Shown here piece by piece: positions 27,937 through 37,484 of a stretch of 64,000 nucleotides of DNA. Location of the stretch: the sequence record OR805295.1, one strand, 5' to 3'. Made by a program: the position numbers and the translations under genes. Below the pieces are notes generated by a model. That model was not told where the DNA came from, did no database searches, and was given only the letters and a program-made list of their open reading frames with translations. The stretch's first letter is position 1. Every line of letters starts with the position of its first letter.

Positions 27937-30900
27937 TATATTATATATTCAGAATTTTATAAGAAGTAGAAAATTAGAAGCAGAATACGGATGTATAGTT
28001 ACCATTAATAATAATACAGGAGCTAGAGAATTTACAGCATATCATCTCAAAAACTGGCATAATTGTTCATTTATATCCTATAATAATTGCAGTATAGATA
28101 TTATTGCATTATGTAACCATACACACACGATAGCATATGGAGCAGATAATGCAAGTTTTATAATAAAAAATAATAACAGAAATATACTACTGTCAGTAGT
28201 TGGTACGAATATGACATATTCGTCTTGTTATTCATCTTCTGTAATTATAAATATTTCTGTTTTATTATAAAATGAATTTAATATTTTGTATAGCTAGCAT
28301 TGATAATATACAAATAGGTATAGACCGGTCAATCGGACATATAAACAATATAATATATATTCGAACTAGCCCCTCTAATGATATAATCAAATATATAACA
28401 GAAGTAAAATATGGTAAAACAGTATCACTTATGTTAAATCTCGATACATCAGTATTTAAAGAATTATTTATTTTTATTTTGTCATGTAAATGTAAACACA
28501 TCACTGAACTAAGAATATACGATAAAGTAGTATTTTATTTTTATTCTGATAACAGAAGATCTTTAACAGATTTGTTATATTACATAGGTCAGTGACAGTA
28601 CATTTACAGAAAAATATAATATCTTATGTATTATTCATTATAAAAACTCTGTTGTGTTATTAAGTGTTGTATGTTAGTGTGCAAGTTAATTAAATGCGGA
28701 ACACCAAATGGATATTATTCTTTTTATATCAAATAATACATACTATATAATATCAACGAGTAATAGCACATTCTTATTATACAGATTTGATCAAAAATGT
28801 ATCTATGTTGCAACAAAAAATCTTAATTCACATCCGGTAGTGATAGACGACGGAAGTAATGGCTGGGGGACAATATATGAGATTCCCGCACTAGTTCAGT
28901 TTTACACAGATATTTTTAAATTTTCTGTGCATCACGAATTAATTCAAATATATGTGCTCACAAAAGTAGGTCAATTTTTCTCTAAGATTGTTACTTACTA
29001 ATATAATTGTACAATACATAGGTAATTTGATGGACAATATATTTTATATTTCGTACGAGATAGCTAGTTGCCGGTATTCTAGTCCAACTACATTTCAATT
29101 AATTAATAAACACAATAGAGAATTTTATGCAATACGTTTGGCTGCAGGATACCCAAGCGACATTTTCGATTTTGATTGGAAACAAAAAATCTTATTAACG
29201 TCTAAATATTGTAATAAGCTTTTATTTCTTATTAGTAGAGAAAAGATACAGGTAACTACCAAGTTAAGGATATTTTATTGCCTTAGTAACGTATCTGCTA
29301 AATCGGATCAAGTTACACTATGAATATCATACCATTAATTTTAATTAGTGTATACTAGTTATTGTGACACTATTAAATATGTCAATTAGATAAAATAAAT
29401 TATTAATGAAAAATCTATTTCCTACCGGATGCATATTTAATATATTGGTATTATCTTATCACACAGATACAATATATGCTGCATGTTACTCAGATTGTCG
29501 TGTTATTGCACTAAACAGTTATTATACATACTATATACCTTTAAATGACTAAATTAATACTTACAATTTCTATTAATACCAAACAGATAGCATTATTAAA
29601 CGATGTTGTGCATTTTCGAAATTATAATAAAGCGGTATACTTTATAAATTTTTTATCTAAATCTAAGTCATTAATTATTGTGGACGAGTTAATAACAGAT
29701 AGTTTTATTATCTTTTATATAAGTGAAAATTGTTCCGAAATTTATGTCACCCCTAGATATGCTTTTATATGTAATTTCGATGGGGTTGGGTTTTTTAGAT
29801 CATAACTAGTTGTGTTAATTAGGATAACTATACTTAATGAAATATGATTTTATATTACATATGAGTAATAACACAAATTGTATTATATTCGACACAAGTA
29901 TTACCTTTGTTGACAACAAAGGTATATTCTTTTATAAAATAATACCAATACACTTGCATGGTATGTGTAATTTTCCTTATATAGATAACAGTTGGTCAAA
30001 CTATATTTCATTACCTATAATTATACAATATTATACAAATAAACTGGTATATTTACCGTCTATTATACTTTTTCGTCAAAATAAATCTAATATATCAGCA
30101 GATACTGTATTTCGTACAAATATGTTATGAACGATGAATTAATACTATTGTTAAGTAAAGAGACTTATATAACTTCATTTTCTCATAACTGTGTAGACTT
30201 GTTCAGCGCTGCTGGAATTATATTTTATAGCATATCTATACCATACATGGGTTCCCGTGCTGCTAGCAGAATACATCATTTATATTTGTGTGTGTTTACA
30301 CTATCTCCTTTTATAATACAATCATTTTGTCGTGTAATATTCGATAATAAGTATACAATTGGCATAGCACATAATGGCACACTTATATGGAAAGGTCTTT
30401 ACCAATAACTTTTTCAGTTGCTATAACATGCACAATGTGCAATAATAAAAAACAATGTGCAATTGTGAATAAAATACATGAATATTATCATTAACATTCA
30501 AGCATCAACATCCGAAATCTTCTTTGATACAGACTGTATCTCGTTAATGACTAGCTTAAGCGGTTATGTTCTTTCGATAAACCGAAGAACAGGAAAAGGC
30601 GCAGTTGTACTTCATAACATAAAGTTAGATTCCATATATCGTATTCTACTATTACAGCACACAACTACATCACTTGTTGTATGGGGTGCTATAGACATTA
30701 AAGTATCATTTAAAGACATAGCCGATGAATACATTTTCCTTGCTATAGGAAGAAGATATTATCACGGCGAATGGTTAAAATAATTCTGACTATGCATAAA
30801 ATTTATTATGACGAAATTTTAGAAATATCTAATAAAGCTAGATTAATTGTAATTTATTCTGGCATATGTTCTATATACGCAAAACCTTCTGTTTATTATA

Positions 30901-32556
30901 ATGTAAATTATAACTTTTATAGTAATCCATTTAGTTTGTGGAATAGGGCAGTATTTATAGCATCTAAACAATGCGGGTACATAGCATTCACTGATAACCG
31001 GGTGCGTATATTAACTGATAAAAAAATAATGTGGTATTATAATTATCTATAAGGTATAGATCGAAAAATGGTATATAAAATACCGAACGACAAGTGTATG
31101 TTGTTAATATTTCTGAGTAGTATAGCTGATACTATATCTATAGAAATCAGTTTTAGAAAAAGAATTAGAAAATGTTTGTACACACTAAAAATATACAAAG
31201 GTGATAACAATTGCATATTTATAAATGGCGTACTATTATTTAAAAAAGTTATATGTAACGATATGATAATTCCTATTTTGATACAATCAGTCACAAGATC
31301 AATATCAATGCATAACGACTTCTTAGAAGTATTTTCTAACAAATATTATTTGACGTTATTTAGAAAAATGACATAGTCTTAAATGGGCAAAAATGCATGA
31401 TTGTTATACTTCTTTCACACTTTACACATGAACTAAATGCACAGTTTAATGAATTAGAACTTACTGTGTATGGTAATAGATTAGCGCAAATATATCCAAC
31501 AGCATTTATAGATACTAACATTCTATGGCATTATATGAGTAAACCTAATTTCTTACTATTTTATATTTCTAATAATGCAAAAACGATAAAATTAAACCAT
31601 TCGCCCCGAATATTATTATATAACTCTCCCATACCTCACTATATTTAAAAAGATAAGTAGGTGAACTATCATTTAAACAGTTGTTGTACAGAAACTCTTT
31701 TAATGAGCAGGTTAATGTCCATCTAAACCCTATGTGCAACCTACCATTTATTATATCAAGTAATTCCCACAAACTAATCTACGGACAGTATTTTAACAAT
31801 ACAAGAGGTCCAGGCATATACATTGCTAATATAAATGGATTTGTGTTTCTATACTCAGTTGTTACTATTTCTAATTTTCAAATATGTTTTAGTATGCTTA
31901 ACGAAATAGATCCTTTGTATTTGCAATACAAATGCGATTCAATAAAAACAATAAACACACTTATGTATTATAGACTAAATGTCAATTCATTACTTAATAC
32001 AATGTTATGTAAAGAATATTATGAATTTAATACTTGAATTATTAAGAAACACTAGTAAAATCATACCGCTTGATGGTCTAAATGCTGCTAGATTTATTCT
32101 TGTAAATACCCATTATATAAAAATAGCATCTTTTTGTTTATCATTTTCTACATGGACCTGCCAGACATTTTTAAGTATAAACCAGTTTCAAATGTCAGAA
32201 TCTACGTTAGTTATCATATCTAATAAAATAAAGAAGATCAAAAGAGTAAAAAAATCATACGCTTTAGTTTTTGACGAATCATATATTCTGTTGAAAATCA
32301 AATGATAATACATATCTCACATTTAACACATATAATAAATGCATATTCTAAATATATAATCGTTACTAATAAAGCTAATGAAATTATACTTTGCAATTAC
32401 ATATATAACCAAACTAAAATTTACATTAGCAAATTATTACTAAATATCGATTTAATCTGTTATATTCAACATAACACAAAAACTATTAGTTATCCCATTG
32501 TACATAGCCATTTTCTAGCGTATCCATATCTTTGCAATAATGCCTTGGTTGTATAA
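27929..32556 (+). other. Array of ~15 two-unit ILxLQ family ORFs (85-115 aa)
   Basis: MDIILFISNNT, MTKLILTISINT, MKYDFILHMSNNT, MNIIINIQAST...ILLLQHTT, MNLILELLRNT, LICYIQHNT. Confidence 0.65.
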
Positions 32557-32558
32557 TT

Positions 32559-32846
32559 ATGGATTTTATTTTCCTACTACAACATAACACTTCTATTATA
32601 TTATTTAATAATATATCATATGGTAGTATAGAATTATACACAAAAGACGAAGTTCCAGTATTAGACATAGAAATATCAAATTCTATGTACATATATCAAG
32701 GTAATTTTAATGACAAAACTGCAATACTCCATCTACAGCAAAATACACACCAGATACAAATAGATATAGATATTATAAAAATGAGAAACATGTACTATAA
32801 AGACATTTATTATATTGTATTACATGGATTATATGGATTATATTAA
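32559..32846 (+). CDS. ILxLQ family protein, recent duplicate A
   Basis: MDFIFLLQHNT...AILHLQQNT. Confidence 0.75.
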   Translation: MDFIFLLQHNTSIILFNNISYGSIELYTKDEVPVLDIEISNSMYIYQGNFNDKTAILHLQQNTHQIQIDIDIIKMRNMYYKDIYYIVLHGLYGLY

Positions 32847-32912
32847 ACTTATCTCCGCAGAAGTAAATCAAATATATCCATATCTTGTCAACAATACTTT
32901 GGTTATATAATT

Positions 32913-33194
32913 ATGGATTTTATTTTCCTACTACAACATAACACTTCTATTATATTATATCGTAATAGTATTATAGAATTATACACAGAAGACGAAATGC
33001 CAGTAATAGACATAGATATAACAAATTCTATGTTCATATATCTAGGTATTTTTAATGACAAAACTGCAATACTCTATCTACAACAAAATACACACACGAT
33101 ACATAAAGAATCATCAAATTCTTATTATATGATAAGAATGAGAAATATGTACTATAAAAACATTTATTATATTATAACACATGGATTATATTAA
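32913..33194 (+). CDS. ILxLQ family protein, recent duplicate B
   Basis: Near-identical to 32559-32846. Confidence 0.75.
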   Translation: MDFIFLLQHNTSIILYRNSIIELYTEDEMPVIDIDITNSMFIYLGIFNDKTAILYLQQNTHTIHKESSNSYYMIRMRNMYYKNIYYIITHGLY

Positions 33195-34022
33195 ACTTAT
33201 CTCTTCAGAAGTAAATCAAATTAAAAAATCCACCCACCCCGGTGGCACCCGCAACGGCTTAACACTATATAACGTACATGACCAACCTATAATAGAAATA
33301 AAGATCCAAAAAATAATATCCCGTGCATATGTGCGTGCAAACTACGATAAGTTGTGTAATGAAATCTGCATTCTTCATATGCAAAGTCAAACAACTTTAA
33401 TATCTACCACACGGAACTCACTAGTAATCTTCACTTCCCACTATATAGTTCACTCTATCATATGAACCTAATCCCCGCACTGCAAAATAAAACTAGATAT
33501 ATATCCCAATTTGATACTACTTATCGTTTAATTAACTCAGATAGAAAATGCTTTTATCTTATAACACGCAAGAACAAAAAGACCACAGTAGACATAGACT
33601 ATAATATCTTCAATGATATTTTCGGTATATTACATTTACAGTCTAAAACACATATACTAAGACGTTCATATAACGTAATACAAGTACATGATGTATATTC
33701 TAATTTAACACATTTTGCCATAGCTCGGCAATAACCATAAATGAAATTTATTATAACATTACAATCATACACAACTACAATACAGTTTCTAACTAATGAT
33801 TTTATATTATATTCTGATAGAAATAGATTATTAGAATTAGGTATATACAATAACAAATTCAACTGTTACATACATATCAATAATTTTAATAATAACAATA
33901 TAATCATGTGTTATCTTCAGCATATAATTTATACAATACACATTCATCCCTTTGTTTTATCGATGTGTAATAGTAATTGGTTATCAGTTAATACAAAATG
34001 TTATTCAAGAAGACTTTACTAA
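33181..34022 (+). other. Three ILxLQ family ORFs (33181-33465, 33462-33734, 33741-34022)
   Basis: CILHMQSQT, GILHLQSKT, MKFIITLQSYT. Confidence 0.7.
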
Positions 34023-34063
34023 AGCAATGAAGATGAATGATAGAAATCACTACACTATAACTA

Positions 34064-34519
34064 ATGAGTGATAATACTCTAATAGATAGAAACTATAGTG
34101 TACAAATAATGAGTGATAATACTAATAGAAGCTATAGTATACAAATAATGAGTGATACCAATAGATGGTGAATAATGAGTGATACTGAGTGATACTAATA
34201 AGATAGTGATAGTGTACAAATAATGAGTGAATTATATAGTACATATTTCGGTGAATACTGATATAATATCAATAGATAGCTATAGTGTACAAATAATGAA
34301 TGATAATACTAATAGATAGTGATACTGATATAATATCAATAGATAGCTATAGTGTACAAATAATGAATGATAATACTAATAGATAGTGATACTGACAGAT
34401 AGCTATAGTGTACAAATAATGAGTGATAATACTGATAGATACTAATACTAATACTGATACTAATAGATAGCTATAGTGTACAAATAATGATTGAATTATG
34501 TAGTACATATTTCGGTGAA
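34064..34519. repeat. Iteron-like AT-rich direct repeat array
   Basis: Seven copies of ATAGT(G/A)TACAAATAATGA; perfect 67-bp tandem 34255-34388. Confidence 0.9.
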
Positions 34520-34896
34520 CCCTAACATCACCAAAGAAAGAAGGACCAAAATTTTGGAAATCTTGCTCTATAGGTCCCATTCATTTTCTTCCCAGTTACA
34601 TTTATATTCTTTCCATTTCTAACCATTTTTATAGATTTTTTTTGGAAAAATCCGTTTTCTGCTATATAGGGACCTTTTTATAAAATATAAGTTCTTTTTC
34701 AATAAAAAATATTTTTTTTGAAAATTTCCAATTCTTGCTATATAGGCCGGTTTCATTATATATACCCGTTTGCATAACATATACGGAATATAGTATGCTA
34801 TACGTATATAAACCGTGACTCTAGACAACTCACTTACTGTACGCTCGTTAATATAATTCCATTTCGTAGTATAACGTATATACAGGAAAGCTAGGT

Positions 34897-37484
34897 ATGG
34901 ATTTGATACTATTTCTTCAACATAATACTGTAGAGATGGACTATAGTGAATGGTACGTTCGTCTTAACAACAAGAATGGAAATAATATAGCTATGATTAC
35001 AGGTAACGGTATTAGACTGTATTATAGAAATATCAATTGCTTACTTGGTATTCTTCATTTACAATACTGTAATTATAATTTTTTCAAGTATATGGGCAAT
35101 TATATTTCTTTTACATTTGTTGAAAATAATAGGTTTGTACATGAAATATATGTTGATTTGAAATAATATATGGATTTCATACTATTACTTCAATCTCATT
35201 GCAATGAGATTGTATATACCAATCAAATCATTGATATGCTCAATGCGCATAATAGGCAGTTCGTATATGGAATTACGTTGCCTATGGGAAGAAAACATGT
35301 GTCATATAATGCATATTGTTTGTATAATAATTTATGTGATGTGATAGGGTTATTGCATATGCAATCTATACTATCGTTAATAGAAGTTAAACATTTAAAA
35401 ACATTTTCTGGTAAAACAGATATTATTGTTAATATGGTGTTTGTTAACGGTTATCTTCAACATGCTATATTCTAATAGTTGTGTCTAATATATGGACTTA
35501 ATATTATTATTTCAGTCTCGTTGTTGTAAGATTTGGTATTCAGATTATATTATAGATATGATCGACTATAGTGATTATACTATAGTATCGTTATTACGCC
35601 CGCCGAATGGGCGTATGTATGCCTATTGTTCGTGTAATAGTATAAACAACGAAACTAGTATAATGCATTTGCAGAATAGCATACATTCATTACAAATAAG
35701 TTATAGTACCCGTTTTATAATGTGTCGTATGACTAATGTGTATGAAGATCTAATTCAATATATTAGTATACTTTAGTAATGTATTTTATCTTGTTTATAC
35801 AGAGATTGTGTTGTTCGATTAGAAGGGCTTCACATGGATTCGATATTTTTGATACAAATGAAGTAGCATATTCATTAATAGATCATAATGGTTTCAGTAT
35901 GAAACATTTCGTTTCATACTCTGTTATAAATGATGTAATAGGAATTATACATTTACAAGTGCATACAAATAAGTTATATTTTCTTCATGAAAAACATCAA
36001 ATGGATATGATTTGTTTTCTAGATAGTAAAGGCGGTCATTTTTTTAGTTTGTAGAGGACGGAATTTGTGTTATTAATATTAATGCTTCAGCGTAATGTCG
36101 AATGGATTCTTTATACTGATTGTGAAATTCGACTTGTTCTGCCCGATTATAACACGTTATATCGTTTTCTAAATCAGAAAAAGAACATTAATGGGTATCT
36201 AAATTGCCATGCTAGTAATGACATTGTAAGTACATTTTATTTACAGTACAATTGCGATACTATATCATTTAGTAGATTTGATGAATTTATGATACTAAAC
36301 CACAATGGCGTAACAATTTATGGCTGGTGACTAGCATGGATATTATATTGATTCTTAGTAATGAAGTTATAAGAATACAAGGTTGTTTTTATGATATAGA
36401 AACTTTACAAATAAGGTTCTTCAATAAATACGACTCAATATATTTTTGTAATAAAATGGGAGGATTTGTTAACTATAAAACATTTCCCAATGAACTATTA
36501 TGTATAATTCATTTGCAGCAGAATACACATAGGTTGATAACACACAGTAAATGTATATTTTTTGATAGTGTAGATTTTATTTCTATTCACTGGGAGACTT
36601 TGTTTGACACAAACGAATATGTATAATGATATGAATTATATATTACTAATTAGTAACCAGTCTAAATATATTTCGTTGAAGGCACTTGGATTAACTGTAA
36701 AAACACGTGAACCAAGGTTAACTCATTATATTATATTTTAAATATGAACGAAGAATATGATATATTATATTTGTCTAACAATACTATGCAAATAACATTT
36801 CGTTTTTCAGTATATTGTTTTTATGATAAAACTCGTAGTATTATATATTGTCAATAAGACAGAAATATAAATGGATTTAATATTAACACTTCAACATAAA
36901 ACTGTGCTAATATCACAGTTTAGTGCATTATTTGTATTTCAAAATATAAACAGTGATACTATATTTTGTTTGGATATAGGTAAACATGTATATTATTTTG
37001 AAATAATATTCAGGTTATATAATAACAAGAATGGCATGGTGTATTTGCAACATGCCATTAATTCTATTAAGTTTACCCTTAGTTTATATTATCATACAAT
37101 TCATGGATATTCTAGTATGCCATCTATATATATGTATGATAAAAAATATGCTATTGTACACGTACCATATGTTAGGAATACTTAATGGATCTTATATTAT
37201 ACATTCAGTACAGTGCTCATAAAATAGAAACTGTTTATAAATCATATCTATTTTATAGTAATAACTATTCACTTTATTACAGACTGTCTGTATATAAGAG
37301 ATTATTGGTACCATCAGGTAGTAAATCATATGCAAGGGCTTCGGCTGAATATTCTGCTATTACAGACAAAATAGGAATGATACACCTACAATCGAAAACA
37401 CACGTAATATTATTTATTAATGACGGTATGTGCATTCACGACAAATCGTATCAAACACTCCATTATATTATACCAAAGTTATAA
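34897..37484 (+). other. Eight two-unit ILxLQ family ORFs (34897, 35170, 35492, 35779, 36067, 36327, 36871, 37185)
   Basis: Mostly MD(L/F)IL-x-(L/F/I)Q starts plus internal G(I/L/M)(L/I)H(L/M)Q. Confidence 0.8.

Follow-up and report, generated by a model that had tools for sequence, protein, structure and literature searches.

Terminase-binding repeats lie beside the cut sites of lambda and SPP1, as the R sites of cosB in the former and as the pac boxes in the latter. Repeats are also found at the genome ends of T7. On its left side, about 12 copies of the heptamer CCTAAAG occur at positions 175–340, with a spacing of 13 nt and directly after the 160-bp terminal repeat, and on the right side, units of CCTAAGG, CCTAAAG and CCTATAG are clustered ahead of the repeat. 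The paper that first described the T7 sequence reportedly named these heptamer arrays SRL and SRR. In the concatemers of T7-like phages, the repeat is present as a single copy; the terminase cuts them at defined sites, and the second copy is made by synthesis (PMC10438801). In the T5 record, nine copies of the 14-nt box TGTGCAAATCCGAC are found, with irregular spacing, between 9752 and 10490, straddling the inner boundary of the left long terminal repeat (LTR). A 23-nt repeat family lies just upstream of these boxes, and T5 is a useful comparator for arrays at the boundaries of long direct terminal repeats (DTRs).

The array described here belongs to Paride (OR805295), a 287-kb jumbo myovirus of Pseudomonas that belongs to the PA5oct-like genus Wroclawvirus. 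It was studied in a stretch of 64,000 nt (the window), which is 100% identical to OR805295; window positions correspond to record positions minus 124,000. The DTR of PA5oct has already been published, and the flanking arrays, the terminal unit, the mirrored array and the MIJ3-like depth step presented below are not described in the papers on these phages that were consulted.

Anatomy of the array

In the 64-kb window, the 20-nt core CTATAGTGTACAAATAATGA is found seven times with 0–2 mismatches; every copy lies on the plus strand, within 34093–34490. The chance expectation for this core in the window is 0.03 copies, and none of 100 shuffles reached seven. The cores mark a plus-strand repeat array (34062–34494) with seven boxes of about 22 nt that resemble ATAGTGTACAAATAATGAGTGA, located at 34095–34116, 34134–34155, 34209–34230, 34282–34303, 34349–34370, 34405–34426 and 34473–34494, so that multiple short direct repeats are present on a single strand. 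The initial annotation of this DNA had placed a core at precisely the seven positions at which these boxes start. Successive box starts are 39, 75, 73, 67, 56 and 68 nt apart, and the stretches between boxes (17–53 nt) are made of (G/A)ATACT, in 14 copies, and of AATAGATAG, in 6 copies, which agrees with the irregular spacers of GATACT and AATACT units that had been noted. Two 67-nt units of the array are tandem duplicates with 100% identity. The plus strand is indeed poor in C, as had also been remarked, with 37 of the 456 nt between 34064 and 34519 (8.1%) against 15.4% in the whole window. The array occupies a single locus and is unique in the 287-kb genome: the search for further copies in the genome returned only chance matches of 13–19 nt, none of them inside the array at the right boundary of the DTR.

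The last part of the array is a composite terminal unit (34471–34528, plus strand), which consists of the last core, a 10-nt linker, the 19-mer TAGTACATATTTCGGTGAA and CCCTAACAT, and which ends at the putative cut. A sequence occurring twice had been pointed out from the start, and this 19-mer has exactly two occurrences, at 34237 and 34501. The first of them belongs to an internal second unit of core, linker and 19-mer (34207–34255, plus strand) that does not continue into CCCTAACAT-CACC and probably arose by duplication as a pseudo-terminal unit.

The array breaks a run of plus-strand genes of about 90–100 codons, in line with its first description as an interruption of a micro-protein array. 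The gene upstream of it, Paride_0259 (33741–34022, plus strand), encodes a hypothetical protein of 93 aa and is the last gene of the unique region, and Paride_0263 (34897–35166, plus strand), encoding a hypothetical protein of 89 aa, is the first gene inside the DTR. A coding role of the array itself was rejected, since the plus strand carries 25–33 stops per frame across it and the ORFs annotated there are inconsistent between records. These small ORFs (Paride_0260, Paride_0261, EST35_0461 of PA5oct and others) vary in strand and extent from one record to another and are probably spurious.

In the GenBank records of Paride and Deifobo, this region is labelled as a CRISPR-like (mini-)array (Paride 34126–34490, which is record 158126–158490; Deifobo record 158039–158336). 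Repeats of about 22–33 nt at a periodicity of 56–75 nt triggered this automatic call, made with the Pharokka pipeline, but the "spacers" of 17–53 nt have common prefixes (TAATACTAATAGATAG) and suffixes (AATAGATAGCT), two of them lie in identical units, and no match to a CRISPR direct-repeat family of Rfam was obtained in the window, where only 12 tRNAs were found. The papers on these phages make no mention of a CRISPR array at this locus. The label is refuted by the anatomy of the repeats and is almost certainly an automatic false positive; since these phages are therapy candidates, the false call in two records calls for caution.

Position at the start of the terminal repeat

The authors of the PA5oct genome (MK797984) assembled a circle and then placed its ends by read mapping with PhageTerm, which reported fixed ends. 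They described direct terminal repeats "of an estimated 39,080 bases", and positions 1–39080 of the record are annotated as LTR, with double sequencing coverage. The array makes up the last ~340 nt of that record, which ends with ...TTTCGGTGAACCCTAACAT (...GGTGAACCCTAACAT) and begins with CACCGAAGAAAG... (CACCGAAG...). Base 1 of PA5oct is homologous to position 34529 of the window (record 158,529), which would be the first base of the DTR and the left physical end of the Paride genome, with the putative cut at 34528/34529 placed by this homology. Position 34529 lies 34 nt past the last box and 9 nt past the second 19-mer, although the PA5oct boundary length was "estimated" by its authors, and hence single-base distances of 9–11 nt at this junction are fragile. 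When both PA5oct boundaries are mapped onto Paride, the DTR measures 38,935 bp (~38.9 kb). The array of Paride very probably abuts the start of the DTR, just outside its left edge, and in virions it comes immediately before the DTR copy on the right, 39 kb from that end.

The deposited sequence of Paride starts elsewhere. The record opens just upstream of the large terminase gene, with a Terminase_6N match at 253–897 (record 1–2397), and the location of this gene at the record start indicates that the start was chosen by convention and does not correspond to a physical end. The record is thus permuted with respect to the physical genome. Paride and most of its relatives have been deposited with arbitrary starts, and the terminal unit lets all members of the genus be re-oriented to their true ends.

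Sequencing depth also bears on the boundary, as its doubling is in principle a sign of where a DTR begins (PMC5418689, PMC10438801). Among public sequencing runs none contained Paride itself, the best sharing 0.38 of its sequence words, and three raw-read runs compared with a 5,001-base stretch yielded no reads from this phage. Logan contigs of an isolate-sized run from 2019, here called X2, were compared with Paride. Expressed as means over whole contigs and not as local profiles, the depths are 25.9 for an 18.4-kb contig that ends inside the array, about 27 (single-copy) for short contigs within the array, and 55.9 for an 8.5-kb contig that begins at window position 34479. Depth therefore rises 2.2-fold where the array ends on its right side, which is what the boundary of a DTR should produce. 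The differences between X2 and Paride include a T inserted after 34711 and GCTATTAG following 34850, and since among the ten records these two indels occur jointly only in MIJ3, the run probably represents MIJ3 or close kin and is probably independent of the data on PA5oct. Neither repeats nor termini are mentioned in the MIJ3 paper. X2 also lacks 354 nt of the small-gene array (joint 32551>32906), a gap that fits a recent tandem duplication of about 350 bp, polymorphic within the genus. Packaging site, one of the three roles initially suggested for the repeats, is the favoured option: the array abuts the DTR start mapped in PA5oct and lies at the ~2.2-fold depth step of the MIJ3-like run, and a packaging role may be read from this position.

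The junction itself contains a 7-bp inverted repeat, TTCGGTG, an 11-nt spacer and CACC(G/A)AA (34511–34535), with the putative cut at the border between the spacer and the right arm. TTCGGTG and CACCGAA match perfectly in seven phages; in Paride, Deifobo and 30-3, a single position is mismatched and no compensatory change is seen, and a requirement for a hairpin or palindrome at the cut is therefore not claimed. A non-coding DTR leader of 368 nt follows (34529–34896, plus strand), with a mean pairwise identity of 97.5% among ten phages. Three plus-strand promoter-like elements ending in TGCT(A/C)TATAGG, with an extended −10-like TGnTATATA, are located in this leader at about 34554–34574, 34635–34670 and 34711–34746. 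They are nearly invariant in the ten phages, sit upstream of the first early gene and are predicted to function as promoters. With a spacing of about 15 nt between hexamers, they do not pass a standard sigma-70 scan (16–18-nt spacer). A cluster of sigma-70 promoters around the array was rejected, as the 12 sites found in 33900–35000 are at chance level (9.9 expected). The genes of the PA5oct DTR have been reported to be early and highly transcribed from the plus (array) strand.

It could be argued that the boxes are binding sites for some other transaction at the DTR border, either as a late/early barrier or insulator or as a T5-like ejection pause signal. The three conserved promoter-like elements, which start about 25 nt inside the DTR, and the early genes carried by the DTR of PA5oct would fit the former, and the T5 boxes, of which nine irregularly spaced copies straddle the inner edge of the left LTR, lie within the annotated injection stop signal. 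Such a function is nevertheless unlikely. The T5 signal comes after the first-entering repeat, whereas the Paride array precedes the right-hand copy of the DTR and does not lie at the inner end of the first-entering repeat, where an injection stop of the T5 type would be placed. Ahead of its right LTR, T5 lacks any comparable feature, and not a single terminator-like hairpin was detected in 33900–35000.

The right boundary of the DTR (PA5oct 39,080) maps to record position 197,463 of Paride, outside the window. The right junction is conserved and unusually GC-rich, and beyond it, outside the DTR, CGTCTATAGGTT and CACTTATAAGT units form an array whose copy number varies. The left array thus has a counterpart at the far end of the repeat, likewise external to it. 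Junction and array lie within record 197,463–197,730, and the array was seen in Paride, PA5oct and seven further relatives, with 30-2 left out because its row was mis-anchored. After the right array comes a microsatellite of the pentamer ACTGT, with 6 copies in Paride and more in Ettore. The left and right arrays show no significant similarity in either orientation, as 50–52 of 300 shuffles reach the observed score. Their composition is opposite and extreme: the GC skew is +0.37 in the left array, above the 99th percentile of 300-nt windows genome-wide, and −0.44 in the right one, below the 1st percentile, and both arrays are G-poor when they are read outward from the DTR. The motif TTCGGTG precedes both putative cuts, by 11 nt on the left and by 10 nt on the right, and the strand concerned has just five occurrences of ACAT(N0-3)TCGGTG in 287 kb, three of them at these DTR boundaries; this motif was picked post hoc, with the PA5oct boundary being "estimated", and serves as a lead only.

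Conservation and variation within Wroclawvirus

An array is present at the same place in all ten distinct Wroclawvirus records. It contains from 3 to 7 cores, with spacings of 27–178 nt, and the distance between the stop codon of the upstream gene and the cut ranges from 274 to 533 nt. The arrangement of the boxes differs in every one of the ten phages, and on comparison of the sequences the array is a fast-evolving VNTR. In the VNTR comparison that the initial annotation had proposed as a check, core number and spacing vary among the ten genus members. The recombination hotspot that it had also considered holds in a weak sense only, that of a hypervariable VNTR arranged differently in each phage. 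For Wroclawvirus, the array is a ready-made VNTR for strain typing.

The end of the array follows a different pattern. All ten arrays finish with one composite unit of core, 10-nt linker, 19-mer and CCCTAACAT at the cut, in which core and 19-mer are 30 nt apart in nine of the phages and 29 nt apart in the tenth. From the 19-mer to position +81 inside the DTR, 4 of 100 columns are variable, compared with 14.7% of those in the protein-coding genes on either side (P=6e-4), a suggestive difference in a genus so shallow (~95% identity) that conservation statistics have modest power. For the last core alone, conservation is not significant among the ten phages (P=0.33). When 46 core copies from the ten phages were pooled, positions 2–23 of the unit, which form the 22-nt box, were nearly invariant and the neighbouring positions and spacers drifted, although the choice of copies with ≤3 mismatches inflates the apparent invariance. 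Outside the genus, a search of IMG/VR with the 16-mer gave 40 single chance matches and no arrays, and the terminal motif gave no match.

These data can also be read as those of a neutral hypervariable VNTR, in which only the terminal unit and the cut site would be functional, and the upstream boxes would be tolerated duplicates that arose by slippage or by recombination and repair at the ends. Box number and arrangement are different in every phage, the identical 67-nt tandem units of Paride indicate recent duplication, the whole terminal unit has been copied internally at 34207–34255, and the neighbouring DNA has undergone a recent duplication of about 350 bp that is absent from X2. Against neutrality stands the fact that none of the ten genus members has lost the array, the minimum being three cores. 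The 22-nt box also stays near-invariant over 46 copies (in the pool with ≤3 mismatches) while the spacers drift, and the second array of mirrored skew at the other boundary and the similar layout of T7 together suggest that the arrangement is not accidental. Neutral evolution of the upstream boxes is the main alternative reading, although we consider it somewhat improbable.

Initially, an iteron-type replication origin had headed the list of candidate functions for this locus. According to this proposal, the boxes would bind a phage initiator and replication would start at the array. Like iteron origins, the Paride array has ~20-nt direct repeats and lies in non-coding DNA that is AT-rich, and a small local dip of the cumulative GC skew is found at 30–34 kb of the window. 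The genome-wide cumulative G−C curve, in contrast, rises near-monotonically from a minimum at the record start to a maximum at the record end, tracking the predominance of plus-strand genes, and it shows no switch at 158.5 kb, the record position of the array. As nearly all genes are on one strand and skew tracks transcription, skew is weak evidence either way. The spacings of 27–178 nt are not multiples of the helical turn and differ between phages, the flanking genes encode hypothetical proteins of about 90 aa and no initiator, and the position at the DTR boundary is better explained by end formation. An origin at the array is very unlikely, and this part of the first proposal is not supported. 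The initial annotation had named the joint lack of a skew switch, a terminus signal and binding as an outcome that would count against it, and here the switch is absent and a terminus signal is present, which amounts to half of that refuting outcome.

The segment just before the array has a peculiar composition of its own. Window positions 30000–34000 (record 154–158 kb), the last ~4 kb of the unique region, include some of the most negative GC skews of the whole genome, although the plus strand carries the genes here as it does elsewhere. Two of the six lowest 300-nt windows are found at record 156301 and 157401, and the 2-kb window 32001–34000 has a skew of −0.23.

Proposed role and likeness to known systems

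The reading that we favour, to which we give about an even chance, is that the array functions in end formation or packaging, as a terminase recognition and end-formation region that evolves as a VNTR. It builds on features that are observed or strongly supported, namely the position of the array beside the DTR start, its retention throughout the genus, the constrained junction and the mirrored partner array. The concatemer would be ordered as unique DNA, left array, DTR, second unrelated array and unique DNA. Within it, the 22-nt boxes would act as a landing zone that concentrates the packaging or terminase machinery, or an accessory DNA-binding protein, a recruitment suggested by analogy with the concatemer processing of T7-like phages, in which the short repeats beside the terminal repeat of T7 may likewise assist the packaging enzyme in locating or forming the genome end. 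The invariant terminal unit would then position a sequence-specific cut that creates the left genome end, presumably at window position 34528/34529. Meanwhile, the array would keep changing fast by duplication and loss of its units. Since copy number ranges from 3 to 7, the boxes are not needed in any fixed number, as would also be the case in a neutral VNTR. A cis element beside the cut would provide an experimental handle on how exact terminal repeats of tens of kilobases are made in jumbo phages.

A more specific version, which we put forward as a doubtful possibility, proposes that the two arrays and the shared TTCGGTG constitute a previously undescribed signal that defines the 39-kb exact terminal repeat by means of nicks and extension of 3′ ends. 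Strand-specific staggered nicks would be introduced at the two boundaries, which the mirrored skew of the arrays would fit. Extension into the DTR would start from a 3′ end provided by the purine-rich strand of each array, and the DTR would thereby be duplicated. If this were true, it would amount to a duplication scheme like that of T7, scaled 240-fold and carried out by a T4-type terminase.

Phages with cos or pac sites resemble Paride in having several short boxes beside a specific cut, which by analogy suggests multimeric binding of a small terminase. Lambda and SPP1 make cohesive or headful ends, in contrast to the exact 39-kb terminal repeats of Paride. Iteron origins differ from the Paride array, which is devoid of helical phasing, of an adjacent initiator and of a skew switch. 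T5 shares with Paride a long terminal repeat with pre-early/early genes and a repeated box at the LTR boundary, although by position its boxes match the right array of Paride and not the left one.

The layout of T7, checked on its sequence, is shared by Paride: an array, a terminal repeat and a second array, with both arrays just outside the repeat. Concatemers of T7-like phages are cut at fixed sequences (PMC10438801), as those of Paride presumably are. The two systems differ in their units, which in T7 are of 7 nt at a regular spacing of 13 nt and in Paride of 22 nt at irregular spacings of 39–75 nt. T7 uses one heptamer on both sides and also inside the repeat, whereas the two arrays of Paride are unrelated in sequence and have opposite skew. 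The terminal repeat spans 160 bp in T7 and 39 kb in Paride, there is no sequence homology between them, and the large terminase of Paride is of the T4 type (Terminase_6N). Among repeat arrays that flank terminal repeats, Paride is thus set apart by the unusual length of its repeat and by non-identical arrays of opposite skew.
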